Positions 3,001 to 40,380 of a DNA stretch of 64,000 nucleotides are shown one piece after another (position 1 is the first letter of the stretch; the number at the start of each line of letters is the position of its first letter). Origin of the DNA: Hydrolagus colliei (lineage: Eukaryota). The notes under the pieces were generated by a model, which was not told where the DNA came from, searched no databases, and saw nothing but the letters and a program-made list of their open reading frames with translations. Made by a program: the position numbers and the translations under genes. The stretch covers positions 4,154,001 through 4,218,000 of the forward strand of contig CM068771.1 of assembly GCA_035084275.1 (NCBI GenBank), in the 5' to 3' direction.

Positions 3001-6000
3001 ATCGACGAGTGCCTACTGTAACTGAGTTGAGCTTTATTCTGTGTAGTTTATCGCTTGTTATTGTTGTAAACAGGTAGTTTGACCACTAAATAATACTGTA
3101 TTCAATATTGGTTTCTAACAGTTTTGCTTTGTATCCTCCAGATCTTGAGAAGACAGTTGGTAAGTCATCAAAGTAAAATAACAATCTCATATTATGATTA
3201 CTCTCACTCACAAGGTTCACACAAATCAGACGTAAGGTGGTGTTACAACACTTCTGTTTGCCAACAAAAGGCAAAGTTACTACACTCTCCTGTCAACCTG
3301 GGGAAATGCTCATGGGGAGCCAAATCAAATTCAAGGATTATTATTGTGGTATAAGGTTAACTTGCAATTCTTTAGCGCTCTCCACGCAGGGCAGCATCTC
3401 AAAGCACTTAAGAATGGCGGAGCCTGACTGTGGTCTGGGGGGGTGGTTGGGCCGTAAGCATGTAGGAAAAGGAATGTTTTAAGGCAGGTCTTAAGGGGAG
3501 ATGGGGAGCAAGGCAGAGGGATTGAAGGAGAGAATCCATTGTTTCGGGGGTCGGTCGCTGAATGTATAAAGGTGGAGAGGAGGGAAAGTTCGCTGGGAAG
3601 TTGACATGTATATGAGATACATGATAAGAGACTTGAAGGAGTATATGGATAGGGCAGAACAGCTGCTGTAAGAAAAGATTGCTTTAATAACTCTTACAAA
3701 CTAGATATTTCACGTCATTAACTGTTCATTTTCTTCGCTTAGACAACAGTGGCTTGTCAATATACACACATTTCAGGGAGGGGGTGGGGTGGATAGAATG
3801 AGCAAGCTTGTCAGTAACACAGGGAGTGAGTCAATGATGGAGGGATGGAGGAAATGAAAGAAGAAGGTATTGAGAGAGAACAACAACAATATTGCACTTA
3901 TATAGCGCTTTTCACGTCGGGAGGACGTCCCAAAGCGTCTCCCAAAACAAGGGAGTGATTTGGGAGCTACATAAGGTTTGATCACTTCTCTCTTGGTTCT
4001 AGGGTGGAAGAGGATTTGTAGGTGTGCAGGTAAGAGTCTAACTGCTAAAGGAACCTGACTCCCCCCCAACCACCCCGCCACACACTTACATTCCCTCCCC
4101 ACCCCCCACCCACCCCCCACACACATGAACTCAATCCCCACCCACACACATACTCCCGCTGAGGGTGGTGTGGGGGTATGTGATGGTATCTCACACACCA
4201 TCACATACCCCCACACCACTCACACACACTCATATCTCTCTCCCACACACACCATCAAATCCCCCCGACACACACATCACCTCACACCACACCCCCCACA
4301 CAACAACAAATATTACATTGATAGAGCGCCTTTCACATTGGGAAGATGTCCCAAGGCGCTGAACAGTCGGGTCAGGACCCGAGCAAGGGGGAGGGGCAAG
4401 GTGGGTGGGGGGAGGGGAGGGAGAGAGTTGGGAGGGCAGCTGATGGCACTGACCAAGAGGAGAGTCTTGAGACTGGCCTTGAAGGAGGTGAAGGGGAAGT
4501 GAGGTGAAGGGACTATGGGATGGAGTTTCAGAGTGTGGGGGCAGAGGCTGAAAGCCCGGCCACCAATGGGAGGGCAGATCAAGCGGAGAACATGGAGCAG
4601 CCTGGAGCCTGGGGTGGGCAGGTTGATAGGATGTCAGCCGGTCAGAGAGATAGGAGGGGGCAAGGTAGTGAAACGTCTTGAAAGTGAGGACAACCCCAAA
4701 CACCCCCTCCCCACAATGCACATAACCTCACAAGCCTCCAACACAACTCTCCCTCCTCCCCCCGCCCCCCCCCCCCCCCACACACACACCCCCACAAACA
4801 CCCTGGCATTCCCTCCCAACACACGCCCTCACATCTTCCCTCTGGCCCCCCCACCGCCGCACACATCCTCACTTCCCCTCACCTACACACACCCTCATGT
4901 CTCCCCCCCCAACACACATAGTCACATCTCCCGCACACACCCTCAAACAACACTCCTCACACAAACCTCCACATAACCCACAAACACCCTTACAGCTCTC
5001 CCCCACACACCTGCAAATTGCTCAGCCAAACACACCCTCATATTCCCCCCACCAAACACACTCACACCCGAACCCTACACACCCTCAGTCACAACTCCCC
5101 CACCACACACATCCTTGCATTCCTCACCCACACATATACACATATCCCCCCATACACACCCTCATATCCCCTCCACACACATCAAACTCCACCCACTAAA
5201 CCCTCACATAACCCTCACATCCCCACACACACAGCCTCACATTCCCCCTCACCCACATAACCTCACATCCCCCCAACACACACACCCTCACATCCCCCTA
5301 CACACACAGCCTCACATCCCCATACACACAGCCTCACATCCCCCTCACCCATAAACCCTCACATCCCCCCTACACACACACACCCTCACACCCCCCCTAC
5401 ACACACACACCCTCACATCCCCCCTACACACACACACCCTCACATCCCCCCTACACACACACACCCTCACATCCCCCCTCCACACTGACACACCCCAGTC
5501 CACACACCCTCACATTCCCCCTCCTCCCCCCCCCAACACACACCCTCACATCCCCCCCCAACACACACCCTCACATCCCATCACACACTCACCCCCAACA
5601 CAAACATTTCCCACCCCCACACATGCTCATAATCCCCTCCAGACTTACATCATCCCCACACACCCTCACATCCCACCCCTCACACACACCCTCACATCCC
5701 ACCCCTCACACACACCCTCCCACCCCTCACACACACCCTCACATCCCACCCCTCACACACACCCTCACATCCCACCCCTCACACACACCCTCACATCCCA
5801 CCCCTCACACACACCCTCACATCCCACCCCTCACACACACCCTCACATCCCACCCCTCACACACACCCTCACATCCCCCCTCTTCCTCTCCCCTCCACAC
5901 ACACCCCCACATCACCGCCCAACTCGTCCCCCTACCCCCCCCACACCCACACCCACAGACTCTGAGCCTTTGTGTTGGATTCTGTTCCCAGGAGATGTCA

Positions 6001-6615
6001 GTGTTTGACACAAAGGCTTCTCTCCCGATGCTGAAGATCATCTTATTTACAATTGTCAATGTGTCCGACATTAATGGTCTGGTTCTCACTCTAGTTACAG
6101 TCACTCTGGATCCTGACACAGCCCATCCCTGGCTCATCCTGTCTGAGGCCCTGACCAGTGTGAGACGCGGAGACACATGGCAGCCGCTCCCTGACACCCC
6201 AAAGAGGTTTAGTGTCTGTCACATTGTCCTGGGGTCTGAGGGCTTCACATCAGGGAGACATTACTGGGAGGTGCAGGTGGGGAACAAGACACAGTGCATT
6301 GTGGGATTGGCCAGAGAGTCTGTCAACAGGAAACAACCAATCACATGGTCACCAGAGGGCGGGGTCTGGGGGGTGGAGCTGGTGGGCGGGGCCTATGAGG
6401 CTCTGACGTCACCCCCCACCCCCCTGCCCCTGACAGTGAGACCCGGGAAGGTCGGAGTTCACCTGGACTATGAGGGGGGACAGGTGTCAGTTTACGACGC
6501 TGATCACATGTCTCATCTCCACACCTTCACCCAAACTTTCACTGGGAAACTCTATCCTCTCTTCTATGTCTGGTATGGTTCCGAGCCTCTGACAATCTGC
6601 CCAGTGACTGGTTAA
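35..6615 (+). CDS. Butyrophilin-like gene, copy A (signal-peptide exon lies upstream of the window)
   Basis: Exons with AG/GT boundaries and all phase-1 introns: IgV 35-382 (348 bp), IgC 587-862, TM 2271-2390 ([33 protein letters not shown]), 3142-3159 (DLEKTV), 4003-4029 (GWKRICRCA), B30.2/PRYSPRY 6095-6615 ([12 protein letters not shown]...GRHYWEV...LDYEGG...LTICP). Confidence 0.92.
915..1222 (-). mobile_element. Older copy of the same SINE in a BTNL intron (also 23138-23445 and 47233-47540)
   Basis: Degenerate head, core and tail on the minus strand. Confidence 0.7.
4297..4690 (-). mobile_element. L2-type LINE 3' end in a BTNL intron (also ~26520-26914 and ~50614-51008)
   Basis: [23 protein letters not shown]...IGGRAFS...FKASLKTLL with a (ttg)n tail. 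Similar fragments at ~1500-1740 and ~3340-3700. Confidence 0.75.
4700..5960. repeat. C/A-rich low-complexity minisatellite tract in the last BTNL intron (also ~26925-28140 and ~51020-51855)
   Basis: Almost no G on the + strand; ~26-bp sub-repeats such as ccctcacatcccacccctcacacaca in copy-specific numbers. Confidence 0.9.
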
Positions 6616-10563: not shown

Positions 10564-12468
10564 ATGGCCCCAGCGATTGGCATCGACCTGGGCACCACCT
10601 ACTCGTGTGTGGGTGTATTCCAGCACGGCAAGGTGGAGATCATCGCCAACGACCAGGGCAACCGCACCACACCCAGCTACGTGGCCTTCAACGACACCGA
10701 GAGGCTGATCGGCGAAGCCGCCAAGAACCAAGCGGCCCTCAACCCCCCCAACACCGTCTTTGATGCCAAGAGGCTGATCGGGAGGAAGTTCGATGACCCT
10801 GTGGTGCAGGCGGACATGAAGCACTGGCCTTTCCAGGTGGTGAGCCAGGGGGGCAAGCCCAAGGTGCAGGTTGAGTACAAGGGAGAGTCCAAGACGTTCA
10901 ACCCCGAAGAGATCTCGTCCATGGTTCTGACCAAGATGAAGGAGATCGCCGAGGCTTATCTGGGCTCCAGAGTCACCAACGCTGTCATCACGGTGCCCGC
11001 TTACTTCAACGACTCCCAGCGCCAGGCCACCAAAGACGCCGGGATGATCGCGGGGCTCAACGTCCTTCGCATCATTAATGAGCCCACGGCAGCCGCCATC
11101 GCCTACGGTCTGGACAAGAAGGGCCAGGGGGAGAAGAACGTCCTGATCTTTGACCTGGGTGGAGGCACCTTCGACGTGTCCATCCTCGCCATCGACGGCG
11201 GGATCTTTGAGGTCAAATCCACAGCCGGTGACACCCACCTGGGGGGCGAGGACTTTGACAGCCGTATGGTCGACCACTTCATCCAGGAGTTCAAGAGGAA
11301 AAACAAGAGGGACATCAGCCAGAACAAGAGAGCAGTCAGGAGGCTGAGGACAGCCTGCGAGAGAGCAAAGAGGACTCTGTCTTCAAGCACCCAAGCCAGC
11401 ATTGAGATCGACTCACTGTTTGAGGGAATTGACTTCTACACCTCCATCACCAGGGCACGGTTTGAGGAGCTCAATGGAGACCTGTTCAGAGGAACCCTGG
11501 AGCCAGTGGAGAAAGCGTTGACAGACGCCAAGCTGGACAAGTCTCAGATCCACGAAGTTGTCCTCGTCGGTGGCTCCACTCGCATCCCGAAGATCCAGAA
11601 GCTTCTACAGGATTTCTTCAACGGCCGAGAGCTGAACAAGAGCATCAACCCGGATGAGGCAGTGGCCTACGGGGCAGCTGTGCAAGCCGCCATCTTGATG
11701 GGCGACAAGTCTGAGAATGTGCAGGATCTGCTCCTGCTGGACGTGACTCCTCTGTCCCTGGGTCTGGAGACAGCGGGAGGCGTCATGACCTCCCTCATCA
11801 AGAGAAACTCAACCATACCCTCCAAACAGACCCAGGTCTTCACCACCTACTCCGACAACCAGTCCGGTGTCTTGGTGCAAGTCTACGAGGGCGAGAGAGC
11901 CATGACCAAGGACAACAACCTCCTGGGCAAGTTTGAGCTGAGTGGAATCCCCCCGGCTCCCCGCGGGGTCCCGCAGATCCAGGTTACCTTCGACATCGAT
12001 GCCAACGGCATCCTTAGTGTCTCGGCCGCTGACAAGAGCACTGGTAATGAGAACAAGATCACCATCACCAACGAGAAGGGCCGGCTGAGCAAGGAGGAGA
12101 TCGAGAGGATGGTGCAGGAGGCTGAGAGGTACAAGGCGGATGATGAGACGCAGCGGGAGAGGGTGATGGCCAAGAACAAGCTGGAGTCGTTCGTCTACAC
12201 AGCCAAATGTGCGATGGAGGACAAGAGCATGGAGGGCAAGGTGGGAGAGGAGGACAGGCGGCAGGTGCTGGACAAGTGCAAACAGGTCATCAACTGGCTG
12301 GATGGAAACCAGACAGCGGAGAAGGAAGAGTTTGAGCACCAGCTGAAGGAGCTGGAGAGGGTGTGCAGTCCTGTCATGGCCAGGCTGAGGCAGGGAGGGG
12401 CAGAGGGCGGTCAGCGATCAGGCAAGAGCTGCCCATCTACCGGCCCAACCGTGGAGGAAGTCGATTAA
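10564..12468 (+). CDS. hsp70: Intronless heat-inducible HSP70 (HSPA1-like), full length 634 aa ending in EEVD
   Basis: Signatures [22 protein letters not shown] and [14 protein letters not shown]; cytosolic C-terminus GPTVEEVD; no introns; HSE/CCAAT/TATA promoter. Confidence 0.98.
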
Positions 12469-13789: not shown

Positions 13790-15319
13790 TTAAACTTTTT
13801 TATTGAAAAGTTCTCTCAAGTCGGACTGTACGAGATCAGCGTGGCGTCGCTCTCTGATGCTCGCAACGATGTCGTTAAGTGCGTTCGAAAACTTGTTGTA
13901 GAGTCCGCTCTTTAGTAAGAAGCGTTCAGCCTCTCGCAGGCCAGTCAGAGCTGTGCTGGCTGTCACAGGCGAGGCCCCATTGTCCTCAGAGTCGCTGTCG
14001 CTGCTGTTCTCGACTAGTAGGCGCTCGGCGGCAACAGCTTCGGCCACGATATTCTCCTGACCTTGCGGATCACGGCAAGGTAGATCAGAGTCAATGTCCA
14101 GGAACTGGTCAGCGATCTGCCTCTCGCCCTCGGCCTCTGTGCTTGTCTTCTCGTCAGCCTCAGCACGGGGAGCAGCGTCACCAGACGCAAACCCTGCCTT
14201 TGCGAAGCAATTGGATATCATCGCAGGCTCCATGCTCTCCCAGGCCCTGGCAGCCATGCCGATGGCATCCAGCAGGCTGATGTGTCTGGCCATCTTTCCC
14301 ACCGAGGCCTGGGGGATGATGGTGTTGCTGTCAATGGCGTCGAGGAGGCGATTCCGTAGCTCCTCGCGGTAGGAAAACTTCAGGTGTCGGATGATTCCTT
14401 GACCCATGGGTTGGATCATGGTGGTGTCCGGGGGAATCAGCTCCAGGCAGATGTTCTTAAGCATTGGGACGGTCAGATGACACGGTGCGCTGTCCATGAG
14501 AAGAAGAACTTTACGCCCCAGGTTGACCAGCTCTGTGTCCCACTGCACCAGCCACTCCTTAAATATCGTTCCTGTCATCCACGCCATTTTGTTGGCCTTA
14601 TAGGTGACAGGCAGAACGGCGCAGTCGACTCCCTGCATACAGCGAGGGCGCTGGCTCTTCCCGATGACCAGCAGTTTGCGCCGGTCGCAGCCGGTCATGT
14701 TGGCGCAGACCATCAGCGTGACACTGTCCGTCGCTCCCTTTACACCACTCGGCTCCGTCGGGTGCAAATACGAGCCGTTGGGCACCGCGCGAAAGCGCAG
14801 CCCCGTTTCCTCCGCGTTGTAGATGGCATCTGGGGCATAGGAAGAGAGCAGCACGGTGCGGGAGTTAGCGCCCTCTAGGCCAGCGCTCCTCAGCTCTCCG
14901 GGAAACAGCCTGTACACTATGTTGTTACGTGCCTTCCAGCGGCTAAACCAGCCGTCGGTCACGGTGAACCCCGGCTTCCCGAGCTCGTGCGCCAGGCTCT
15001 GCGCCTTGGCTTTGAGGATGGGCCCATTGAGCGGCTGCCCCTCGGTGGACGCCCTTTGGAACCACAGGAGGAGAGCGAGCTCCACCTGGGGATCTTTGCC
15101 TTTGCGATCCCTCTTCTTACGCAGACCCACGTCGCCCTCGGCCAAGGTGGCCGCTGTCCGGCGCAGCTTCGTCTCACTGGCGACGAGGTCACCCAGCGTC
15201 GACTTCTTGACCCCGAGCCTCCTGGCCAGTTCTCGCAGGGGAGTCCCCCGCGGCTCCAACTTGACCCTGTCTAACACTTCTATCTTCTCCAAAAGTGTCC
15301 GGGACATTTTCTTCGACAT
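13790..15319 (-). CDS. Tigger/pogo-derived (TIGD/CENP-B family) domesticated transposase, 509 aa, copy 1
   Basis: N-terminal HTH, CENP-B-type HTH (ALLLWF...GPILKAKA...GWFSRWKARNNI) and DDE_1-type domain (IYNAEETGL, LLLMDSAPCH, IQPMGQGII). Intact single-exon ORF; no flanking TIRs seen. Confidence 0.9.
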   Translation of the reverse strand: MSKKMSRTLLEKIEVLDRVKLEPRGTPLRELARRLGVKKSTLGDLVASETKLRRTAATLAEGDVGLRKKRDRKGKDPQVELALLLWFQRASTEGQPLNGPILKAKAQSLAHELGKPGFTVTDGWFSRWKARNNIVYRLFPGELRSAGLEGANSRTVLLSSYAPDAIYNAEETGLRFRAVPNGSYLHPTEPSGVKGATDSVTLMVCANMTGCDRRKLLVIGKSQRPRCMQGVDCAVLPVTYKANKMAWMTGTIFKEWLVQWDTELVNLGRKVLLLMDSAPCHLTVPMLKNICLELIPPDTTMIQPMGQGIIRHLKFSYREELRNRLLDAIDSNTIIPQASVGKMARHISLLDAIGMAARAWESMEPAMISNCFAKAGFASGDAAPRAEADEKTSTEAEGERQIADQFLDIDSDLPCRDPQGQENIVAEAVAAERLLVENSSDSDSEDNGASPVTASTALTGLREAERFLLKSGLYNKFSNALNDIVASIRERRHADLVQSDLRELFNKKV

Positions 15320-15439
15320 TATGGCTTCTTATGTGTTGAGAGGATGACACAAGTTTAACAATAGAAAATAATACTTCCGATGTCTCAAATGGCTTCACAG
15401 GTCTTTTTTTTTGGGGGGGGTGGGGTGGGGGGGCGGGAA

Positions 15440-15570
15440 GGGAGGAAATGTCTGGTTCATTTCCGTCCGCCGGGAAATGTCCGGGAAGTGTCTGGTTCCT
15501 TCCCGAAGCGGTCGATGTCCCGCCCCCTTTCCCCCCCTCCCGCTGGCTGCTGATTGGCCGCCCCCAGGGA
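15440..15570 (-). promoter_or_regulatory. CpG-rich TATA-less promoter of TIGD copy 1
   Basis: ETS-like ccgggaaat/ccgggaagtg motifs, GC box gtcccgcccc (15517-15526) and CCAAT (ATTGG 15553-15557), 120-250 bp 5' of the ATG. Confidence 0.55.
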
Positions 15571-16231
15571 GCTTCAGCGAGTGGCTTAATGGAACAGACC
15601 AGGTTTGAGGCAGGAGGAAACACACACACACTTTATCTGCCGTGTTAGTATTAGTGCCCAGTCCCTCTTCACAAGTACCACTTTACCCTCTTTTCCCCCT
15701 TTCTCCCCCGGCCCCGATTTGGCTGCCGCGTTTCGCCCACAAACGTACAGTCAATTCTCCTACCCTCCTTCATCCCACCCCGACCCCTCCCCATCACCCC
15801 TGCTCTTGTCCCTACCTGTCTGTACAGCTCCTCGGGACGTCCCCTCGACGCGAAAGGCGATATATAAACGTACGTTTTGATTGATTTAGTGGATGAAACG
15901 TGGCAGCCATTTGCACACGGCAGTGTCCCACAAACAGCCGTTGATTGGGTGACCCACAATCGAGTAACACGGGCATTCCTACTTACCGCTAGTTAAACAG
16001 AGGCATGCGAAGGTACTTCCCTGCCCAGGAATCGACTCTGGGTCCTCTCGCTCGAGAGGCGAGAGAGCTAACCACTGAACTGCAAGACTCCACAAACTCA
16101 ACGGTGCTCGATTGCCTTTGCAATCTGCACACCAACTGATTCACTGGGACTATTTAAGCTGTTGTTGGCTGAATGAGAATATTGGTCATGTATTGCAGAA
16201 TGCACAGCTTTGAATATACATCTTGAAATAC

Positions 16232-16590
16232 AATAATAATAATAATAATCCTTGCATTTGACGCAGCGCTTTTCACACTTCATCGTCTTAGAGATTTTTC
16301 AAAGCGCTTCACGGAATATACTGTGAAGTGAAGCGACTGTATATATTTGTGGGCGAAACGCAGCAGCCAATTGCGCACAGCAGCGTCCCCCACACACAGT
16401 CGTGGATTGAAATGACAAATTTCTTTATTGTGTTTATTTGGAGGGATTATTATTGTGTGTGTGTGTGTGTCTGTGTGTATGTGTGGAGTAAGGAAACTTG
16501 CCCAAGGTTTCGCCCTGACCTGCCTGGATTTGAACACAGGTCTCACGCTCGTGAAGGCGAGTGCTCTAACCACTGAGCTACAGGAGCTAC
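16232..16590 (-). mobile_element. Same tRNA-derived SINE family, minus strand (also 38277-38632 and 62778-63133)
   Basis: Reverse complement of head, core and (att)n tail. Confidence 0.8.
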
Positions 16591-17364
16591 AGAATATAAT
16601 ATATTATGTTATAACGAGGGCTGGTTTAAAGCAAAATCTCAGAAGTATCCAATACCAATGCCATTTTAGAAACTAAATTTAAAAATTTTGTTTAATTAAA
16701 TTTAAAATATCTCCCCGAGAGCCAACCCCCTCCCGCCCGATCTAAGCCTGCTCTTCCCTTGTGGAGAGGTGCAGCCATGTGGTCGGTGACTGAGAGTGAA
16801 ACTCGTCTCTTCGCTTCTCACACGATTGCAAACAGTGGCTCCAACGCGCCCCTCACTGGCCAGCCTTAACACACAGCTTCCAATTGTGTGTGTGTGTGCA
16901 CAGTCAGTATGTGTGTGTGCGTGTGTGTGTGTGTGTATGTAAAGTCTATGTGTATGTATCTGTGTGTATGCAGACTGTGTGTTTGTAGTCTGTGTGTACA
17001 GTATGTGTGTGGGCGTATATACATTCTGTGTGTGTACAGTATATTGACTACAAACACTGACTACACACATACACTACAGTGTGTGAAGTATACAGTAGTT
17101 TACGGTGTGTGAGTGTATGTACGATCAGTGGATATACACAGTCACTGTGGGTCTAAATAAATGCAAACTAAGAATAAGAATAATCCTCGCATTTGGTACA
17201 GCACCTCATTAGGTCTTTGAGACGTCTCAAAGCCAGAGTACACTGTAACAGACTGTACATTTTGTGGGCAAAATGCTGTAGCCAACTGCGCACAGCAGCG
17301 TCCCCCCAAAAGGTAGTGGATCGAGGGACCAAATTCTTATAGTTTTTTATTTTTTAAGGGATTA

Positions 17365-17820
17365 TTACTCCCGAAAATGGCAACTCGCCAATCGACAGGT
17401 TTCTACTTGCTGCTAGGCATATAGAGGCCCCATCCTACTTAACCAATCTACTCTCCCCCTACACGCCCACCCGGACCCTCCGTTCAACAGGACTTGTCCT
17501 GCTCCAAGCCCCCCGCCCGAACCGCCCCACCATCGGAGGCCGGGCCTTCAGTTTCTCCGCTCCCACCTTATGGAATGCCATCCCTCAATCCCTCCATTTC
17601 GTCTCTTCCCTTTCCTCTTTCAAGGCCGGTTTGAAGACTTTCCTCTTCGATCGTGCCTTTTGTTCCACCCCGAACTCTTTTACCTCCCCTTCGTGTTTCA
17701 CCCCTTCCCAAACACTCCCCTCCCAGCTCGGGTCACACGCCTCCTGTTCAGCGCCTTGGGACGTCCTCCCAACGTGAAAGGCGCTCTATAAATGTAAATA
17801 TAAAATTGTTGTTGTTGTTG
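17365..17820 (+). mobile_element. L2-type LINE 3' end (mostly deleted in unit 2; resumes at ~63915)
   Basis: APSYLTNLLSPYTPTRTLRS...IGGRAFSFSAPTLWNAIP...FKAGLKTFLF with a (gtt)n tail. Confidence 0.8.
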
Positions 17821-17915
17821 AGTGAGGAAACTTGCCTCACTTTTCGCCCTGTGTGTGTACAGTCAGCGTATGACTGCCCCTGACTGTTTCTCTCTCTCGT
17901 GTCTTCTCCCCACAG

Positions 17916-18067
17916 CTGCCTCACTCCCTGCGCAGCCTCGACGAAGTCACATACGCAGAGATCAACTGGACCCCGATGAGGAGACCCAGCCCACAGCCCA
18001 GGGCTCTGTGTGCACACACTGACTACATACACACTGAGTACAGCAGCATCCGAACTGACACACTGAC
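17916..18067 (+). other. Orphan terminal exon of an inhibitory-receptor cytoplasmic tail (ITIM + ITSM), unit 1; runs into an N-gap
   Basis: Strong acceptor (ttctctctctcgtgtcttctccccacag) followed in phase 0 by LPHSLRSLDEVTYAEINWTPMRRPSPQPRALCAHTDYIHTEYSSIRTDTL. AATAAA downstream at 18901-18906. No upstream exons found in the unit. Confidence 0.6.
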
Positions 18068-18243
18068 NNNNNNNNNNNNNNNNNNNNNNNNNNNNNNNNN
18101 NNNNNNNNNNNNNNNNNNNNNNNNNNNNNNNNNNNNNNNNNNNNNNNNNNNNNNNNNNNNNNNNNNNNNNNNNNNNNNNNNNNNNNNNNNNNNNNNNNNN
18201 NNNNNNNNNNNNNNNNNNNNNNNNNNNNNNNNNNNNNNNNNNN
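18068..18243. other. Assembly gap (N run)
   Basis: 176 N. Confidence 1.
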
Positions 18244-18394
18244 GAGTACAGCAGCATCCGAACTGACACACTGACACACACACTGACACACACACACACT
18301 GACACACACACACACTGACACACACACACACTGACCACATACACACTGACACACACACACACTGACCACATACACACTGAGTACAGCAGCATCC

Positions 18395-18631
18395 NNNNNN
18401 NNNNNNNNNNNNNNNNNNNNNNNNNNNNNNNNNNNNNNNNNNNNNNNNNNNNNNNNNNNNNNNNNNNNNNNNNNNNNNNNNNNNNNNNNNNNNNNNNNNN
18501 NNNNNNNNNNNNNNNNNNNNNNNNNNNNNNNNNNNNNNNNNNNNNNNNNNNNNNNNNNNNNNNNNNNNNNNNNNNNNNNNNNNNNNNNNNNNNNNNNNNN
18601 NNNNNNNNNNNNNNNNNNNNNNNNNNNNNNN
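18395..18631. other. Assembly gap (N run)
   Basis: 237 N. Confidence 1.
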
Positions 18632-18940
18632 ACAATCTAAGTACACCAGTATCCGAGGTTGCAAAAACACACACACACATTCACTGAGTACACGAGCATC
18701 TGAACTGACACACATGTGGAACACACACATTAGCATTCACACGCACATTGAAACACACACACACACTGACACACACACACACTGACACTGACACACTGAC
18801 ACACACACACACACTGACACACACACACACTGACACACACACACACTGGGTACATCAGTAATTTAATGTAATTTAATTAACAGTAATTTAAAAAATGAAA
18901 AATAAAATTTTAATTGAAAAAAACTTTTGGTGCAATGTAT

Positions 18941-19263
18941 GAGCTCCTGTGGCTCAGTGGTTAGAGCACTTGTCTTGCAAGGCTGGGGAGACCTGTGTTC
19001 GAATCCAGGCAGGTCAGGGCAAAACGCCAGGCAAGTTTCCTTACGCCACACGCCTAATAATAATCCCAACAAAAAAAACACAACAATAAAGTTGGTCATT
19101 TCAATCCACGACTGTGTGTGGGGGGGACGCCGCTGTGCGCAATTGGCTGCCGCGTTTCACCCACAAATGTACAGTTAATTCACTTTACAGTGTATTCTGT
19201 GAAGCGCTTTGGGACGTCGATAAGATGTGAAAAGCGCCGTATCAAATGCAAGGATTATTATTA
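18941..19263 (+). mobile_element. Full-length tRNA-derived SINE (also 43032-43360)
   Basis: A box TGGCTCAGTGG (18950), B box GTTCGAATCC (18997), core tgtgcgcaattggctgccgcgtttc and tail ...aaatgcaagg(att)n. Confidence 0.85.
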
Positions 19264-19609
19264 TATATATATGACCGAGTGAGACACCATTGTCCACGCA
19301 ATTTAATAAATAATAATCCCTGTCTGACACACATACCTTCTCGTGTCTGGGGGACGTCTCAAAGCGCTTCACAGGATTCATCCCCCCTACCTCGTCTCTG
19401 CTCACAGCAGTACTGCTGCTTACGCTCTACTGGGTCTGGCCTCCTCCTTGTCCCCCCGAATCCTATGCTCTACCATCGGCAGCCGTGCTTTCCACCACTG
19501 TGCCCTGAAACTTTGGAGGTTGGAACTCCCTCCCTCAACCCCTTCACCTCAAACCCTCCTTTCCACCATCTTCAGGTGGCACCTGAGACCTTTCTCATTG
19601 ACTTGAGCC

Positions 19610-20200
19610 ATACGGACATGGAGGTGCAGAGGGACTGAACGTCCAGTGTGAAAAGGAGACGTTCAGGACCGTGCAACTGGAAATTGTCGAAATGTCGGAG
19701 GGCGTCCGACGAGTCATGGATATAGTTGGGTAGGGATTGGACGAGGGGAGAAAAAATGTAGTCTAAATATGATGAAATGAATTCATTGGGACAGGAGCAG
19801 GCTGAGACAACGGGTCTGCCAGGACAGTCCTGTTTAGGAATCTTGGGGAGAAAGTGTAGGCGGGCTGTGCGGGGTTGGGTGACTATGAGGTTGGACGCAG
19901 TAGGAGGAAGGTCACCAGCGGAGATGAGGTTATTAACTACCTCAGTGACGGAGGCTTGGTGTTGAGCTGTGGGGTCATGGTTGAGTGGAAGGTAGGCGGA
20001 GTTGTCGGAGAGCTGGCGTTTGGCCTCTGCCAGATACGGCTCCTTACGCCAGACAACGACAGCAGCACCCTGGTCAGCTGGTTTGATGATGAAATCAGGG
20101 TTGGCCCTGAGGGAGTGGAGTGCAGTGCGTTCAGAGGGAGAGAGGCTGTTGTTTGCTGTTGGACTGAAGGTGAGGCTCTGACCAGACTCAGACAACAATA
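19610..20200 (-). mobile_element. Penelope-like retroelement RT fragment
   Basis: IIKPADQGAAVVVW...PRTARLHFLPKIPKQDCPGRPVVSACSCP...LDVQSL, the N-terminal PLE RT motifs; truncated. Confidence 0.85.
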
Positions 20201-20523
20201 TGTGAGGAGCTACCGTCAACACTCGCAGTGAACATCACAGGACTGTTGCCCACTCTATGATGTAGGGAATATTTGAACTGTTTGTGTGTGTTTTCATGTG
20301 ATTCCCACAAACCAGGAAATCAGCAGGAAACCAAAACCAGAAATAGTCTCTGAACATTGCCATCTTGGGACACAAGTTCAATTCACTTCTAACAGTGAAG
20401 ATTCTTCTCTTTCAGGACCGAACCCAAACAGGTCAGTGTCAGAAATTGTTTCCTGAAATAAAATTAGACAGTGATATAAAAACAATCATACTTTTACATT
20501 ATATCGCAGTTACAGGATTGACT

Positions 20524-20537
20524 GGTTTCACTTTCGC
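20524..20537. promoter_or_regulatory. ISRE / IRF element upstream of BTNL copy B
   Basis: GGTTTCACTTTCGC (reverse complement GCGAAAGTGAAACC) matches the RGTTTCNNTTTC consensus, about 510 bp upstream of the ATG. Confidence 0.6.
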
Positions 20538-21041
20538 ACCCTGTGATGTTGAGTTTAACTGTGAAATAAATGTTCTCCATTGTCAGGTTTGTGTAAATAG
20601 TAAAGCGGGAGCGGCTGCTGTGAGTTTATTCCCAGTTTGTTGTTTAAACGCTGAGAATTGGAGGCCAGTGAGGAGTGAGGGGAATGGGAGCCTCGTCTCT
20701 GACCTGCACCTTGTTGGGGGTGAATAAGGAGCAGCTCTGAGGAGAGGGAGGGGAGGAGCACATAGAGCAGTCACACACAACATGTTTCTTCCCCAAAACT
20801 ACCTCATGGAGACCCCCCAGTGTGGGGCTGGGGGGGGCCTCACTGTCACAGTTAAACTTCCCAAATCATTATTCCGACAGAGATGGCAGTTTGTTCTGCT
20901 GTGTGTGTGTAAATGTTGTAAGATCGCAGAATTATTCATTAGGTTTTTTATTTTGACCAATTATGTACAAACACAAATCTCTGTAATTATCTGATTTGCT
21001 GTTGCAACCAGATGTGATCTCAATGTGAAGGCCCGAAGAAG

Positions 21042-24000
21042 ATGATCTGGAAACGCTGTATTCAGGTCCTGTGGCTTGTGCTCCCCCTCTCTCTGGCTGG
21101 TAAGGAAACACGTTGAATCTGTTTGGTTTCTGCTGATGGTAAAGGGAGGACCTCTCCATTCTGGTTCGTGTCCATAGGAAAGTGTAAAAGTTCCAAATGA
21201 CATTTGTGTCTATTTGCGGCCAGGGCTCACTATGTCTCCTCATCCTTCTTGATCTTCCCACGGCCACTAACATGGTTGACCACTTTATCCTTCTCCACTC
21301 CCTTTCCTCTCAGCTCCACGTTCGTGGCTCTGTCCTTTCCTGGTTCTGTTCTTACCTTTCCCATCGTCTCCACTTTGTTTCCACCAATGACTTCTCCTGT
21401 ATCCCACGCTCCATCACATGTGATGATATCCAGGGTTCTTTACCTGGTCCTACCCTTTTTAATATTTACATTCTCTCGCTTCCGGATGTGGGTGACAATC
21501 AACTCTGTCTCTCTGCCTATACCCCCAACTCCAGGAACAATGCTGTCCTGATAGATTGTCGGTCAGACAAGGCTTGGATGAGACCCAATTTCCTAACTAT
21601 AAATGTACAAGACTAAGGCTCTCCATCACCATCCTTTCCTTCCATCAGCATCTCTGCACCCCGGGCACTGACGGCATCAATATTCGTGGATGTACTCTCC
21701 ACCACCAATACATAAGAACTTAAGTATTAGGCGCAGGACTAGGCCATTTGGCCCCTCAAGCCTGCCCCGCCATTCAATAATACCATGGCTGATCTTCAAA
21801 TCTAACTCCACCTATGCGCCTCATTTCCATATCCCATAATCCCTTTGTCCAAAGAAATCTATCAATTTCAGTCTTGAATATGCTAAAGGATTGAACATCT
21901 ACAGTTTTTTGGGTTAGAAAATTCCATAAATTCACTAGCCTCTGAGTGCAGAAGTTTTCCCTCAACTCATTGTGAAAAGGCTGACACCTATTCTTAAGAC
22001 TATAACCCCAACCAGGATCACCAACCAGGGGAAACAGTCTCCCACTGTCTACTCTGTCATGGCCCTTAATAATCTTATAGGTTTCTTTCATGTCACCTCT
22101 CATTCTTCAAATGCAAGGATTATTATTATAGTTCAATTGCGGCTGCCAAAGGGAACTTCTACTTTATGTTAGTATGTCACTAACTTTCTGTTGATAGTTA
22201 TTCTGAGACAATGTGACTGAAAATCCTAACTATTGTCGATTGTTTGTTACTGAACAGAGAGATTCACAGTCAATGTTCCCAGTCACCCTGCCCTAGCCAT
22301 TGCTGGTTCAGACGTTGTCCTGGACTGTAAGTGTTCCACAAAGCTGCCATTAGAGGGTGTGGAGGTGAGATGGTTCAGGGTGAGATTCGACTCCCCTGTG
22401 CACTTATTTAAAGAGGGACATCATCAACTGGATATACAGGATGAAGCCTATAGACACAGAACACAACTGTTTGAAGAGAAGTTTATCAATGGTGATGTGT
22501 CTCTCAGACTGGAAGATGTACGGGTGACAGATCATGGAGAGTACACATGTTTCGTCGAGTACGACGGATCGTATGAACAGGGAGTGATAGAGTTGAAAGT
22601 TATAGGTCAGTAATGTTTCCAATTCATTTTATTACATGTAATCTGTGTGTGCAAGAATTCACTCATCTTTAATAAGTTCAAAGTACAATAATTTCTATGA
22701 ACAAGAATGTCCGTTTATTCAGAATGTTGTAGATGTGTTTTTGTTAAGTTACTGCACTGTAATGTCCCGGGTAAAATATTGTCTGATTCATGTCTCCTGT
22801 CTCTTCCAGGCCTTGGCAGTCAGCCTTGGATTCATGTTGATGGACAACACAATGGTGGTGTGATGCTATTGTGTGAATCCAGTGGATGGTTCCCAGCACC
22901 AGAGGTTCTGTGGTTTGATGATCAGGGAAACAAATTATCAACACTCAGTAACTGGACAGTCAAACAGGATTCTAAAGGTCTCTTCAGTGTTCAAAGCCAA
23001 ATAGAAATAATCCATTCAACCAACAAGATCAAGTGTCTGATTCATAATTCAGAAAATGAACAAGAAGGAAAACTCCAAATCTTGGGTTGGTAAACACAGT
23101 AAATATTAATGTTGGTCTGAAAAATATGATGTAGATTTATTATAATAACTCTTGCATTTGAAATAACACTTTTCACGTTTTCTATGCATCTCAAATTGCT
23201 TCACAGAATATACTGTAAAATATATTGGCTGTGTATACATGGGCGAAACGTGGCAGAAAGTTGCGCACAGCAGTGTCCCTCAAACAGCTGTGTATTAAAA
23301 TAACCAATTATTATTGTGTCTTTTTGAGGGACTATTATTAGCTGTGCAGAGTAAGGAAACTTGCCCAAAGTTTCACCCCACCGGGAATCAAACTCACGTC
23401 TCGCGCTTGTCAGGGGAGTGCTCTAATCACTGAGCTACAGGACTCCATAAAGTATTGTACAGGACTTCACTTGATGTGTTGTACAACACATGAAGTGAAT
23501 ACATATCGGTCTGGATGATACGGTCTATCTAATTTCATCCTTTCAAAATATGAAACTCGTAAGAATTAGGAGCAGGAGTAGGCCACTCGGTCGCTCGAGC
23601 CTGCCCCACCATTCAATAAGATCATGGCTGATCTATTCTAACTCCATCTACCCGCGTTATCCCCATATCCATTCATCATCTCCTTTATCTCTCTATTATC
23701 CCTCTCATCATCTTTAATAACAACTATTTACATTTGTAAATTGCCTTTCACATCGAGACAACGTCCCAATGTGGAAGATGCTATAAAACGTCAAAGATTT
23801 GGTCATCAGCTGGGGGATAGGGTCAAGAAGGATGGAAGGCAGGTGGGTGGGAGTAGGTGGGTGACCGAATGTATGGTCAAAGTGGTGGGTGTTGAAGGTG
23901 AGAAGGGACAGCCCGAGGTGGAGGGACTGTGGATGGGGTTCCAAAAATACCTCCGTACTCCAGCCCACCCAACCTTCCTGTTAATTATTCAAGCTGCTTA

Positions 24001-32604: not shown

Positions 32605-34458
32605 ATGGCCCCAGCGATTGGCATCGACCTGGGCACCACCTACTCGTGTGTGGGTGTATTCCAGCACGGCAAGGTGGAGATCATCGCCAACGACCAGGGC
32701 AACCGCACCACACCCAGCTACGTGGCCTTCAACGACACCGAGAGGCTGATCGGCGAAGCCGCCAAGAACCAAGCAGCCCTCAACCCCCCCAACACCGTCT
32801 TCGATGCCAAGAGGCTGATCGGGAGGAAGTTCGATGACCCTGTGGTGCAGGCGGACATGAAGCACTGGCCTTTCCAGGTGGTGAGCCAGGGGGGCAAGCC
32901 CAAGGTGCAGGTTGAGTACAAGGGAGAGTCCAAGACGTTCAACCCCGAAGAGATCTCGTCCATGGTTCTGACCAAGATGAAGGAGATCGCCGAGGCTTAT
33001 CTGGGCTCCAGAGTCACCAACGCTGTCATCACGGTGCCCGCTTACTTCAACGACTCCCAGCGCCAGGCCACCAAAGACGCCGGGATGATCGCGGGGCTCA
33101 ACGTCCTTCGCATCATTAATGAGCCCACGGCAGCCGCCATCGCCTACGGTCTGGACAAGAAGGGCCAGGGGGAGAAGAACGTCCTGATCTTTGACCTGGG
33201 TGGAGGCACCTTCGACGTGTCCATCCTCGCCATCGACGGCGGGATCTTTGAGGTCAAATCCACAGCCGGTGACACCCACCTGGGGGGCGAGGACTTTGAC
33301 AGCCGTATGGTCGACCACTTCATCCAGGAGTTCAAGAGGAAAAACAAGAGGGACATCAGCCAGAACAAGAGAGCAGTCAGGAGGCTGAGGACAGCCTGCG
33401 AGAGAGCAAAGAGGACTCTGTCTTCAAGCACCCAAGCCAGCATTGAGATCGACTCACTGTTTGAGGGAATTGACTTCTACACCTCCATCACCAGGGCACG
33501 GTTTGAGGAGCTCAATGGAGACCTGTTCAGAGGAACCCTGGAGCCAGTGGAGAAAGCGTTGACAGATGCCAAGCTGGACAAGTCTCAGATCCACGAAGTT
33601 GTCCTCGTCGGTGGCTCCACTCGCATCCCGAAGATCCAGAAGCTTCTACAGGATTTCTTCAACGGCCGAGAGCTGAACAAGAGCATCAACCCGGATGAGG
33701 CAGTGGCCTACGGGGCAGCTGTGCAAGCCGCCATCTTGATGGGCGACAAGTCTGAGAATGTGCAGGATCTGCTCCTGCTGGACGTGACTCCTCTGTCCCT
33801 GGGTCTGGAGACAGCGGGAGGCGTCATGACCTCCCTCATCAAGAGAAACTCAACCATACCCTCCAAACAGACCCAGGTCTTCACCACCTACTCCGACAAC
33901 CAGTCCGGTGTCTTGGTGCAAGTCTACGAGGGCGAGAGAGCCATGACCAAGGACAACAACCTCCTGGGCAAGTTTGAGCTGAGTGGAATCCCCCCGGCTC
34001 CCCGCGGGGTCCCGCAGATCCAGGTTACCTTCGACATCGATGCCAACGGCATCCTTAGTGTCTCGGCCGCTGACAAGAGCACTGGTAATGAGAACAAGAT
34101 CACCATCACCAACGAGAAGGGCCGGCTGAGCAAGGAGGAGATCGAGAGGATGGTGCAGGAGGCTGAGAGGTACAAGGCGGATGATGAGACGCAGCGGGAG
34201 AGGGTGATGGCCAAGAACAAGCTGGAGTCGTTCGTCTACACAGCCAAATGTGCGATGGAGGACAAGAGCATGGAGGGCAAGGTGGGAGAGGAGGACAGGC
34301 GGCAGGTGCTGGACAAGTGCAAACAGGTCATCAACTGGCTGGATGGAAACCAGACAGCGGAGAAGGAAGAGTTTGAGCACCAGCTGAAGGAGCTGGAGAG
34401 GGTGTGCAGTCCTGTCATGGCCAGGCTGAGGCAGGGAGGGGCAGAGGGCGGTCAGTGA
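32605..34458 (+). CDS. hsp70: Intronless HSP70, copy 2, truncated at 617 aa (no EEVD)
   Basis: Identical in protein to copy 1 for 617 aa. Codon 618 is TGA (34456-34458) instead of CGA; the old tail is intact and in frame to TAA at 34509. Confidence 0.93.
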
Positions 34459-35835: not shown

Positions 35836-37365
35836 TTAAACTTTTTTATTGAAAAGTTCTCTCAAGTCGGACTGTACGAGATCAGCGTGGCGTCGCTCTC
35901 TGATGCTCGCAACGATGTCGTTAAGTGCGTTCGAAAACTTGTTGTAGAGTCCGCTCTTTAGTAAGAAGCGTTCAGCCTCTCGCAGGCCAGTCAGAGCTGT
36001 GCTGGCTGTCACAGGCGAGGCCCCATTGTCCTCAGAGTCGCTGTCGCTGCTGTTCTCGACTAGTAGGCGCTCGGCGGCAACAGCTTCGGCCACGATATTC
36101 TCCTGACCTTGCGGATCACGGCAAGGTAGATCAGAGTCAATGTCCAGGAACTGGTCAGCAATCTGCCTCTCGCCCTCGGCCTCTGTGCTTGTCTTCTCGT
36201 CAGCCTCAGCACGGGGAGCAGCGTCACCAGACGCAAACCCTGCCTTTGCGAAGCAATTGGATATCATCGCAGGCTCCATGCTCTCCCAGGCCCTGGCAGC
36301 CATGCCGATGGCATCCAGCAGGCTGATGTGTCTGGCCATCTTTCCCACCGAGGCCTGGGGGATGATGGTGTTGCTGTCAATGGCGTCGAGGAGGCGATTC
36401 CGTAGCTCCTCGCGGTAGGAAAGCTTCAGGTGTCGGATGATTCCTTGACCCATGGGTTGGATCATGGTGGTGTCCGGGGGAATCAGCTCCAGGCAGATGT
36501 TCTTAAGCGTTGGGACGGTCAGATGACACGTTGCGCTGTCCATGAGAAGAAGAACTTTACGCCCCAGGTTGACCAGCTCTGTGTCCCACTGCACCAGCCA
36601 CTCCTTAAATATCGTTCCTGTCATCCACGCCATTTTGTTGGCCTTATAGGTGACAGGCAGAACGGCGCAGTCGACTCCCTGCATACAGCGAGGGCGCTGG
36701 CTCTTCCCGATGACCAGCAGTTTGCGCCGGTCGCAGCCGGTCATGTTGGCGCAGACCATCAGCGTGACACTGTCCGTCGCTCCCTTTACACCACTCGGCT
36801 CAGTCGGGTGCAAATACGAGCCGTTGGGCACCGCGCGATAGCGCAGCCCCGTTTGCTCCGCGTTGTAGATGGCATCTGGGGCATAGGAAGAGAGCAGCAC
36901 GGTGCGGGAGTTAGCGCCCTCTAGGCCAGCGCTCCTCAGCTTTCCGGGAAACAGCCTGTACACTATGTTGTTACGTGCCTTCCAGCGGCTAAACCAGCCG
37001 TCGGTCACGGTGAACCCCGGCTTCCCGAGCTCGTGCGCCAGGCTCTGCGCCTTGGCTTTGAGGATGGGTCCATTGAGCGGCTGCCCCTCGGTGGACGCCC
37101 TTTGGAACCACAGGAGGAGAGCGAGCTCCACCTGGGGATCTTTGCCTTTGCGATCCCTCTTCTTACGCAGACCCACGTCGCCCTCGGCCAAGGTGGCCGC
37201 TGTCCGGCGCAGCTTCGTCTCACTGGCGACGAGGTCACCCAGCGTCGACTTCTTGACCCCGAGCCTCCTGGCCAGTTCTCGCAGGGGAGTCCCCCGCGGC
37301 TCCAACTTGACCCTGTCTAACACTTCTATCTTCTCCAAAAGTGTCCGGGACATTTTCTTCGACAT
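35836..37365 (-). CDS. TIGD-like protein, copy 2 (509 aa)
   Basis: Intact ORF with 6 amino-acid differences from copy 1. Confidence 0.9.
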   Translation of the reverse strand: MSKKMSRTLLEKIEVLDRVKLEPRGTPLRELARRLGVKKSTLGDLVASETKLRRTAATLAEGDVGLRKKRDRKGKDPQVELALLLWFQRASTEGQPLNGPILKAKAQSLAHELGKPGFTVTDGWFSRWKARNNIVYRLFPGKLRSAGLEGANSRTVLLSSYAPDAIYNAEQTGLRYRAVPNGSYLHPTEPSGVKGATDSVTLMVCANMTGCDRRKLLVIGKSQRPRCMQGVDCAVLPVTYKANKMAWMTGTIFKEWLVQWDTELVNLGRKVLLLMDSATCHLTVPTLKNICLELIPPDTTMIQPMGQGIIRHLKLSYREELRNRLLDAIDSNTIIPQASVGKMARHISLLDAIGMAARAWESMEPAMISNCFAKAGFASGDAAPRAEADEKTSTEAEGERQIADQFLDIDSDLPCRDPQGQENIVAEAVAAERLLVENSSDSDSEDNGASPVTASTALTGLREAERFLLKSGLYNKFSNALNDIVASIRERRHADLVQSDLRELFNKKV

Positions 37366-37616: not shown

Positions 37617-39959
37617 GCTTCAGCGAGTGGCTTAATGGAACAGACCAGGTTTGAGGCAGGAGGAAACACACACACACTTTATCTGCCGTGTTAGTATTAG
37701 TGCCCAGTCCCTCTTCACAAGTACCACTTTACCCTCTTTTCCCCCTTTCTCCCCCGGCCCCGATTTGGCTGCCGCGTTTCGCCCACAAACGTACAGTCAA
37801 TTCTCCTACCCTCCTTCATCCCACCCCGACCCCTCCCCATCACCCCTGCTCTTGTCCCTACCTGTCTGTACAGCTCCTCGGGACGTCCCCTCGACGCGAA
37901 AGGCGATATATAAACGTACGTTTTGATTGATTTAGTGGATGAAACGTGGCAGCCATTTGCACACGGCAGTGTCCCACAAACAGCCGTTGATTGGGTGACC
38001 CACAATCGAGTAACACGGGCATTCCTACTTACCGCTAGTTAAACAGAGGCATGCGAAGGTACTTCCCTCCCAGGAATCGACTCTGGGTCCTCTCGCTCGA
38101 GAGGCGAGAGAGCTAACCACTGAACTGCAAGACTCCACAAACTCAACGGTGCTCGATTGCCTTTGCAATCTGCACACCAACTGATTCTCTGGGACTATTT
38201 AAGCTGTTGTTGGCTGAATGAGAATATTGGTCATGTATTGCAGAATGCACAGCTTTGAATATACATCTTGAAATACAATAATAATAATAATAATCCTTGC
38301 ATTTGACGCAGCGCTTTTCACACTTCATCGTCTTAGAGATTTTTCAAAGCGCTTCACGGAATATACTGTGAAGTGAAGCGACTGTATATATTTGTGGGCG
38401 AAACGCAGCAGCCAATTGCGCACAGCAGCGTCCCCCACACACAGTCGTGGATTGAAATGACAAATTTCTTTATTGTGTTTATTTGGAGGGATTATTATTG
38501 TGTGTGTGTGTGTCTACGTGTGTGTGTGTGGAGTAAGGAAACTTGCCCAAGGTTTCGCCCTGACCTGCCTGGATTTGAACACAGGTCTCACGCTCGTGAA
38601 GGCGAGTGCTCTAACCACTGAGCTACAGGAGCTACAGAATATAATATATTATGTTATAACGAGGGCTGGTTTAAAGCAAAATCTCAGAAGTATCCAATAC
38701 CAATGCCATTTTAGAAACTAAATTTAAAAAATTTTAGTAATTAAATTTAAAATATCTCCCCGAGAGCCAACCCCCTCCCGCCCGATCTAAGCCTGCTCTT
38801 CCCTTGTGGAGAGGTGCAGCCATGTGGTCGGTGACTGAGAGTGAAACTCGTCTCTTCGCTTCTCACACGATTGCAAACAGTGGCTCCAACGCGCCCCTCA
38901 CTGGCCAGCCTTAACACATAGCTTCCAATTGTGTGTGTGTGTGTGTGCACAGTCAGTATGTGTGTGTGTGTGTGCACAGTCAGTATGTGTGTGTGTGTGT
39001 GTGCACAGTCAGTATGTGTGTGTGTGTGCACAGTCAGTATGTGTGTGTGTGTGTGTGCACAGTCAGTATGTGTGTGTGTGTGTGCACAGTCAGTATGTGT
39101 GTGTGTGTGTGTATGTAAAGTCTATGTGTATGTATCTGTGTGTATGCAGACTGTGTGTTTGTAGTCTGTGTGTACAGTATGTGTGTGGGCGTATATACAT
39201 TCTGTGTGTGTACAGTATACAGGGCCGTACGCAGGATGTTTAATGGGGGGGGTGCGAATTGCTAGTGAAGGGACCAACAATGGCCGGGGGCTTGGGGGCT
39301 GCCCCCGGGGCCCCCTCGAGGCTCCGACGTTTTACACAGTTTGAAGTCTTATTTAATCGATTCAGAAGATCCAATATGAACGGTATTTATGCCCTTGGTG
39401 TTTAAGAGCATCATTATTTATTCAGTGTTTATATTTTCCCCGGTAGTCCATGTCTAATTGGGAAGGTCGAATGTGTTCGCCGATAAAAGCCAACACGATT
39501 GTTGACTCGATGATGTAAGGAATGCGAACGATAAAGTAAATTACAATCCAATTAACACAGTACAATGACGAATGCTTGATAAATGTATGTGTATAGAGAA
39601 AATGATCATAAACTACAGATTGACGGTAACTAATAAGTTGTTCTGCATTGTTATCCTAAGACTAAACTTCTTTCGGACTGTAATGAACAATAATGTAAGA
39701 ATAAAGTATGAATGATGTGCTCAGATATTCCAGCAAAGCAAATTTTATAAAAGACAAGAAAATATACAGAAACTGAAAATCAGTGGCAAACAGTTAATTC
39801 ACACGTGTTACAAGCCTGTTATCAGCATTATCCTGAAAATATCGTTGAACTGTGAGCAATAGTGTAGTTAGTTTTTATTTATTTAGAATCAAAATGAAAG
39901 GCAGTGACCCATCAAGCAATACTGACCTGACGAAAAAATACTTGAAAAAATAATGGAGG

Positions 39960-40380
39960 GGAAATTAATTCTTTAATAGCGTTCCATATTCGAGACGCCT
40001 CGGTCGCTTTTAAGCGAATACGTCAACCGCTCTACCAATATCGATTTCCATATTATAATGAATGTGCATTAACGCGAGTGCTGAAAGTCGCTCCTATACG
40101 GAGCAGAATGCTGGACACTTAGGCAAACCCAGGAGATTAGGTGACTCGTGAGGTATATACCAGGCTTCTAAGAGACGCCCTGAACGTTTACTGGCGACAG
40201 CATCTGACAAATAGTGAGCTATATGGTACACTACCACACTGGTATCACAGACATTACCGCAGAGGCGTCTTAGGTTTAGCGGACATAGCTGGAGAAGCCG
40301 GGAGGAAACTGTCCATAGTGCTACTATCCTATGGGAACCATTGCACGGTCACAGAACACGAGGTAGACCGACCCTAACCT
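39960..40380 (+). mobile_element. Decayed LINE ORF2 C-terminal fragment (RTE-like) nested in the DNA transposon
   Basis: Frameshifted ES-LLYGAECWTLRQTQEIR...YTRLLRDALNVYWRQHLTNSELYG, resembling the post-RT region of RTE-type LINEs. Confidence 0.6.

Follow-up and report, generated by a model that had tools for sequence, protein, structure and literature searches.

The 64-kb window, by which we mean the whole stretch of DNA analysed here, is a tandem array whose repeating unit of about 22-24 kb carries a butyrophilin-like (BTN) gene, an HSP70 gene and a TIGD gene, and in self-alignment the units are 96-99% identical to each other. With the unit borders taken from the self-alignment, the array and its genes are laid out as follows:

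1-22223: array unit 1
22224-46318: array unit 2
46319 to the window end: array unit 3
31-387, + strand: ORF of the butyrophilin-like IgV domain (Pfam); unit-2 counterpart at 22258-22610
About 590-867, + strand: BTN-type IgC domain (Pfam)
2271-2390, + strand: butyrophilin transmembrane (TM) exon with a phase-1 donor
6101-6612, + strand: butyrophilin PRY/SPRY (B30.2) exon with a phase-1 acceptor and its stop codon at 6613-6615
10564-12465, + strand: intronless HSP70 gene (Pfam)
13793-15319, 35839-37365 and 60339-61865, - strand: Tigger/TIGD-type transposase ORF of 509 aa with CENP-B N, HTH_Tnp_Tc5 and DDE_1 domains
21042-21099, + strand: butyrophilin-like leader exon, which serves the Ig exons of the following unit

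The butyrophilin-like gene appears complete and open, with leader, IgV, IgC, TM and PRY/SPRY parts and with phase 1 at all boundaries checked; a low-complexity tract rich in proline, histidine and threonine occupies about 4060-6000 in the intron 5' of the B30.2 exon. The HSP70 of unit 1 is full-length with 634 aa. In units 2 and 3, a CGA-to-TGA change (34456-34458 and 58948-58950; counterpart in unit 1 at 12415-12417) shortens the protein by its final 17 residues, with which the EEVD co-chaperone motif at the C-terminus is lost, and apart from this truncation the three HSP70 proteins are identical. The TIGD ORF has stayed intact across the three units and varies between them by 2-6 residues, its protein shares 80% identity with a 'TIGD6-like' protein of the elephant shark Callorhinchus milii, and it looks like a domesticated transposase gene rather than a dead transposon.

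The subject of this analysis, an exon encoding the tail of a putative inhibitory receptor, is found between the promoter of TIGD and the leader exon of the following BTN gene. It is located 3.1 kb 5' of this leader and 2.3 kb 3' of a GC-rich promoter-like region (about 15400-15650) that faces away from TIGD, and the gaps around it are occupied by SINEs and a LINE fragment.

The tail exon and its copies

The features around the exon, including those assigned by the comparison with C. milii described below, are:

16604-17915, + strand, unit 1: 3' part of the last intron of the parent gene (collinear blastn blocks)
About 17160-17428, unit 1: old SINE in this intron, with a counterpart at the equivalent position of the C. 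milii gene
17429-17815: younger SINE insertion about 100 bp 5' of the acceptor, found in unit 1 and probably unit 3, not in unit 2
17885-17915, + strand: polypyrimidine tract and AG acceptor, homologous to the acceptor of the C. milii gene
17916-18067, + strand: coding part of the terminal-exon copy of unit 1, phase 0, with the frame open into a masked stretch
18244-18860, + strand: CA-rich minisatellite built of ITSM-like units, with a masked stretch inside it, homologous to the C. milii 3' UTR repeat
18901-18906, + strand: AATAAA in an AT-rich stretch, a possible poly(A) signal judged from the letters only
38649-39019, + strand: distal intron block of unit 2 (blastn), followed by a LINE-like insertion at 38974-41855
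41870-42349, + strand: proximal intron of unit 2 with the old SINE and the acceptor (blastn to the C. milii locus)
42350-42538, + strand: tail-exon copy of unit 2, with the ITIM intact at 42380-42397 and a stop codon at 42536-42538

Directly 3' of a strong acceptor, the + strand at 17916-18067 reads LPHSLRSLDEVTYAEINW...HTEYSSIRTDTL, and the stop-free translation of 17916-18065 is LPHSLRSLDEVTYAEINWTPMRRPSPQPRALCAHTDYIHTEYSSIRTDTL. Two tyrosine motifs share this frame: VTYAEI (17946-17963), an ITIM by the criterion [S/I/V/L]xYxx[I/V/L], and TEYSSI (18033-18050), an ITSM by the criterion TxYxx[V/I] in the same frame, with 29 residues between their tyrosines. The ORF then enters the masked stretch 18068-18243; this and the other masked stretches (18395-18631 and 42679-42950) were kept as N, and frames were read up to the first gap. 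ITIM-like hexamers are plentiful, with 198 across the six frames of the window. The combination of an ITIM with an ITSM in one open frame is seen once in these frames. In an order-2 Markov simulation, 0.23 such pairs are expected for the loose consensus, and the strict form was seen in 0 of 200 simulations.

The acceptor reads tctctctcgtgtcttctccccacag/CTG with pyrimidines at 17 of 20 positions. Acceptors of this strength number only six on the + strand of the 22-kb unit, and its pyrimidine tract surpasses those of the butyrophilin IgV, TM and B30.2 acceptors. Neither the Pfam search with the tail-exon peptide nor the Rfam and tRNA scans of 15500-22300 on both strands returned a match.

In unit 2, the sequence is identical to that of unit 1 from the acceptor through ...HTDYIHT. 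The ITSM is then replaced by (CACACTGA)n, and the frame ends with ...HTHYTD and a stop codon, so that the ITIM is present in both copies and the ITSM in frame only in the one of unit 1. In the ITIM half of the exon the two copies agree at every position (100% identity) and no decay is visible there; this identity is uninformative, since the units are 96-99% identical anyway. The ITSM codons, starting at 18033, are themselves the first unit of the CA-rich minisatellite, which extends to 18860 and whose further units in unit 1 include EYSSIR at 18241 and 18376, SKYTSIR at 18636 and TEYTSI followed by a stop codon at 18683. In unit 1 this minisatellite is amplified for its first unit type; in unit 2 (42534-42580) it is contracted. 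The differences between the two copies fit relaxed constraint on the exon. They could also be an assembly artefact, since they sit in low-complexity DNA beside masked or gap stretches.

The alignment of unit 3 with unit 1 continues to the window end and takes in the initial 26 bases of the SINE at 17429; a third copy of the tail exon is therefore probably located just beyond the window. Near the tail exon the units fall into subtypes: the SINE at 17429-17815 is present in unit 1 and probably in unit 3, and unit 2 is without it and carries instead a LINE-like insert of 2.9 kb (38974-41855) that is missing from unit 1. Away from the tail exon, the closest pair is units 2 and 3 (99.4%). Such a mosaic of subtypes suggests exchange between the units.

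The preliminary description of this DNA had proposed a strong acceptor opening in phase 0 into an exon with both motifs, and a poly(A) signal further downstream. The letters and coordinates of VTYAEI and TEYSSI, the spacing of 29 residues and AATAAA at 18901 are confirmed, and the acceptor holds up as well, with its 17 of 20 pyrimidines and a phase-0 counterpart in C. milii. The tandem ITIM/ITSM tail, in turn, stands for unit 1 but not for unit 2, where (CACACTGA)n has taken the place of the ITSM.

The homologous gene in Callorhinchus milii

For the identification of the exon, the tail-exon peptide was searched with exhaustive HMMER (phmmer) against 1.84 billion representative proteins. The sole true match is LOC103190391 of C. 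milii (E 6.8e-11, 65% identity), in which residues 228-276 of the 277-aa protein XP_007909341.1 align with residues 1-49 of the peptide; a second match (P0002) is a low-complexity repeat protein. A word-index protein search with the 50-aa peptide at the end of a 400-aa filler made of BTN pieces from the window, which admits candidates of 220-700 aa and was scored at residues 351-400 only, yielded two candidates, none of which scored. The matching record is entitled 'uncharacterized protein LOC103190391 isoform X1' and comes from the elephant shark. Behind a signal peptide, this protein has a single V-set Ig domain and a TM segment, followed by a tail that contains VTYAEI and TEYTSI and ends with ...EEVTYAEIKWMPMRRPNPETRTLRAHADCAHTEYTSIRAHTH. 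The tail peptide is identical to this protein in 32 of 50 residues, and the two tyrosines are 29 residues apart in both.

We mapped the exons of this gene on the C. milii locus (L001):

L001 12432: leader exon
L001 13306-13683: IgV exon
L001 14397-14537: TM exon
L001 16387-16470: cytoplasmic exon of 28 codons (exon 4), ending with CGG/gtaagt in phase 0
L001 22039 onward: terminal exon, starting with CTG CCC after ...ccccacag in phase 0

With the junction CGG/gtaagt and ccccacag/CTG, the window peptide is the exact counterpart of the terminal exon, both in its boundary and in its phase. Two further C. milii sequences of the LOC103190391-type gene are available, which we label P0005 and P0006 (with P0001 for XP_007909341.1). 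P0005 (310 aa) has the same exon junction, differs from XP_007909341.1 in 2 residues and starts with 33 residues before the start methionine that resemble a translated 5' leader; we take it as transcript-type support for the gene model. In the isoform P0006, the last exon of the gene is translated in another frame and lacks the motifs.

The homology extends well beyond the coding part. In blastn, 16604-16953 of the window aligns with L001 20282-20685 (72-80%), 17054-17356 with L001 21538-21855 (72%, including a SINE at the matching relative position) and 17812-18067 with L001 21939-22192 (about 79%), where the intron portion 17812-17915 corresponds to L001 21939-22038. In unit 2, a single alignment joins 41870-42655 to L001 21529-22343, with 70% identity over 849 bases. 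Within the last 100 intron bases before the acceptor, the identity between window and L001 reaches 87%. The minisatellite of the window and that of C. milii (L001 22156-22380) agree in the order of their units, which is TEY(S/T)SIR, (S/T)KYTSIR and TEYTSI-stop. The homology, collinear with C. milii, covers the acceptor, the exon and the CA-rich minisatellite together with about 1.7 kb of last intron, and it stops at about 16604, from where nested SINEs continue to the TIGD promoter.

Compared with C. milii, the DNA of the exon is 78% identical (22% divergence) and has a dN/dS ratio of 0.37, with changes at 13 of 34 synonymous sites versus 20 of 116 non-synonymous ones (Fisher p 0.017). Such a ratio fits descent from a constrained coding exon; being lower than 1, it would also be compatible with constraint that still acts on the copies themselves.

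The surroundings of the C. milii gene are of a different make. It is located just downstream of a RING-finger gene (L001 1-7171), and retrovirus-like pol fragments, SINEs and microsatellites follow on its 3' side (L001 23700-25650). No BTN, HSP70 or TIGD gene was found in the fetched locus with its roughly 10 kb beyond the last exon. SINE families are common to the window and this locus, and together with the 80% identity of the TIGD proteins they mark the DNA of the window as chondrichthyan, probably holocephalan.

What the window does not hold is the body of the gene. In a tblastn search of the window with XP_007909341.1, the tail was found in two places (E 6.5e-15) and nothing else, the IgV domain of BTN scoring no better than E 0.13; counterparts of the leader, Ig, TM and exon 4 of LOC103190391 were found nowhere in the 64 kb. 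In unit 1, every ORF on the + strand with a length of 55 aa or above, 96 in number, was scanned with Pfam, and the one V-set and the one Ig-C domain detected both belong to BTN. From the TIGD promoter to the tail exon, the only exon with an ATG and a phase-0 donor has three codons and lies inside a SINE, and a TM or ectodomain exon belonging to the tail is missing from the window, such domains being found only in the C. milii homologue. Since the gene-body exons are missing, the element is a fragment from the 3' end of a gene, and each complete unit has one.

As to the kind of receptor, the C. milii homologue resembles PD-1 (PDCD1) in its architecture: signal peptide, one V-type Ig domain, TM segment, a short cytoplasmic exon and, in the final exon, the ITIM followed by the ITSM. 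PD-1 has the same exon plan, with a spacing of 25 residues between ITIM and ITSM. The likeness to the PD-1/CD28 family is one of architecture only, without detectable sequence kinship, and no PD-1, CD28 or CTLA-4 chain is among the 59 PDB matches of the homologue up to an E of 1; the window element differs further from PD-1 in that it has no ectodomain at all. In PD-1, ITIM and ITSM act in SHP-2 binding (PMC6994217; PMC7078208).

The best match to a solved structure is SCN4B (7dtd_B), a weak match with an E of 1.1e-5 that covers residues 17-200 (signal, IgV and TM), and CEACAM V domains score nearly as high in the F-G strand region. The single-IgV group of sodium-channel beta-4 and myelin P0 also includes MPZL1/PZR with its two ITIMs, and PZR-like proteins join an MPZ-type ectodomain with tyrosine motifs that bind SHP-2. 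KIR and LILR receptors have C2-type Ig domains, and Siglecs combine C2 domains with an N-terminal V-set domain that binds sialic acid; the ectodomain of the homologue, a single V-set domain and nothing more, is not of their kind. The search with full-length XP_007909341.1 in 5.8 billion protein clusters returned only the protein itself, and no wider family could therefore be built. The single-sequence AF2 model had a mean pLDDT of 41.6 with confidence only at the TM helix and was thus judged unfit for a fold search. We found no paper naming LOC103190391, and it is not among the genes in the papers on shark PD-1 and the CD28 family.

Origin and likely fate of the copies

The terminal exon of LOC103190391 and the element in the window are alike in acceptor, phase, VTYAEI, TEY(S/T)SIR and the spacing of 29 residues, and also in the upstream intron with its SINE and in the downstream TEYxSI minisatellite with its order of units. 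Unlike the C. milii gene, the window copy consists of the 3' end only, is embedded in a BTN-HSP70-TIGD array and has lost the ITSM in unit 2. Based on this comparison, 16604-18860 and 38649-42655 appear to be the 3' end of a LOC103190391-type gene, and the element a partial-gene duplicate of the ITIM/ITSM tail exon from this gene lineage. The retained intron and the SINE in common show that the piece was made by genomic duplication and not as a retrocopy. It is like other partial-gene duplicates found where segmental or tandem duplications end, as a 3' piece with its intron that occurs once per unit and with one copy decaying; a difference is that here the array edge and the parent gene lie outside the window.

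In our preferred reading, which we consider probable, the internal copies are non-functional relics of a segmental duplication with its breakpoint in the last intron of the parent gene. Of the two edges of this DNA-level duplication, one would fall within that intron, at some point from about 15650 to 16604, and the second beyond the TIGD promoter. The duplication would have taken the exon along with the downstream BTN, HSP70 and TIGD genes. The unit of about 22-24 kb would then have been amplified via unequal crossing-over. A point against this history is that the homologous gene of C. milii has no BTN, HSP70 or TIGD neighbour in the fetched locus. The internal tail-exon copies are most likely untranslated, inert passengers, one of which, in unit 2, would have lost its in-frame ITSM by contraction of the minisatellite. 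In the intact gene, by comparison, the exon would form the C-terminus of a type I membrane protein that has a single V-set Ig domain. Receptors with ITIM and ITSM, of which PD-1 is the best studied, are phosphorylated on both tyrosines by Src-family kinases, and SHP-1 or SHP-2 then binds this pair through its tandem SH2 domains. We infer that the two tyrosines of the intact receptor, when phosphorylated, would likewise dock SHP-1 or SHP-2 and dampen signalling.

This agrees in large part with what had been proposed before the homologue was known. The exon was described as most likely the last one of an Ig-type inhibitory receptor, and a C. milii protein with signal peptide, IgV, TM, ITIM and ITSM indeed ends in the homologous peptide, encoded by a phase-0 terminal exon with collinear intron and 3' UTR, while the rest of the gene is missing from the window. 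The preliminary description would have been given up if no homologue ended in this peptide, and LOC103190391 does. From the assignment to the KIR/LILR/Siglec/PD-1 type, the PD-1-like architecture is borne out by the homologue, but neither a KIR/LILR/Siglec ectodomain nor a sequence kinship with PD-1 is. The breakpoint had been placed between 15600 and 17900, and the homology of the last intron, which begins at or before 16604 and just 3' of the nested SINEs abutting the TIGD promoter, falls into this range. The intact receptor gene predicted for the 5' end of the array would lie outside the window. Use of the exon by a read-through transcript, offered as the alternative, is disfavoured for transcripts from BTN by the phase mismatch discussed below.

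An active role of the copies is unlikely but deserves consideration. Here, they would be working alternative terminal exons, and a parent receptor 5' of the array, or a long transcript, would splice to 17916 or 42350, giving tails with the ITSM from unit 1 or without it from unit 2. The strong acceptor, conserved with a bona fide one in C. milii, the intact ITIM in both copies, the dN/dS of 0.37 and the AATAAA downstream would all suit this explanation. Nevertheless, such a transcript must cross a complete BTN and HSP70 gene on the same strand, each with its own 3' end, as well as the TIGD gene on the opposite strand; its upstream exon was not found within the 64 kb, and the copy nearest to the parent gene would take the splicing first. 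An extension of this idea, to which we give little credence, is that slippage or unequal exchange in the minisatellite adds, removes and re-frames ITSMs, with the array copies serving as a menu of alternative tails for a live parent receptor. If true, tails with the ITIM alone or with ITIM and ITSM would amount to a repeat-driven tuning of inhibitory signalling.

Slightly less credible still is a 3' exon of a non-coding or novel transcript that starts divergently from the TIGD promoter (about 15400-15650). The promoter-like region pointing towards the exon and the strong acceptor would allow for it, but the only ATG exon with a compatible donor is the three-codon one in the SINE, and no sequence feature demands such a transcript.

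A use of the exon as an alternative inhibitory tail of the butyrophilin-like gene of its unit, which would give a protein of the type IgV-IgC-TM-ITIM/ITSM with the B30.2 domain replaced, is very improbable, even though the tail exon lies on the same strand and 3' of the BTN exons. The BTN TM donor (2271-2390) and the B30.2 acceptor are both phase 1 and the tail exon requires phase 0. Since the BTN exons are phase 1, splicing from them into the tail would be out of frame, and read-through from BTN was rejected on this ground. Phase-1 entry leads to another reading without the ITIM and, by hand translation, to an early stop, just as the out-of-frame last exon of the C. milii isoform P0006 is without motifs. 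Besides, the complete PRY/SPRY exon with its stop codon at 6613-6615, the intronless HSP70 gene and the antisense TIGD gene intervene. We give a negligible probability to an open frame that arose by chance in CA-rich low-complexity DNA and spells the two tyrosine motifs by coincidence: the ITSM does lie within a microsatellite-like repeat and ITIM-like hexamers are common in the window, but 49 of the 50 residues are homologous to a terminal exon of another genome together with the flanking intron, a homology of protein and intron that refutes this explanation, and the strict motif pair was absent from all simulations.

With the copies regarded as probable duplication relics, the element within the window is most likely inert, and its meaning lies in what it records. 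A reading of sequence only was able to recover an unannotated exon. The segmental duplication of the BTN-HSP70-TIGD array gains a scar that can be dated and oriented, with one edge that would fall within the final intron of a receptor gene next to it. Furthermore, the exon points to a poorly known lineage of chondrichthyan receptors that combine a single IgV domain with ITIM and ITSM and have one annotated member. If the parent gene adjoins the butyrophilin array, it would be another candidate inhibitory receptor linked to genes of the B7/butyrophilin type and, as such, of interest to comparative immunology.
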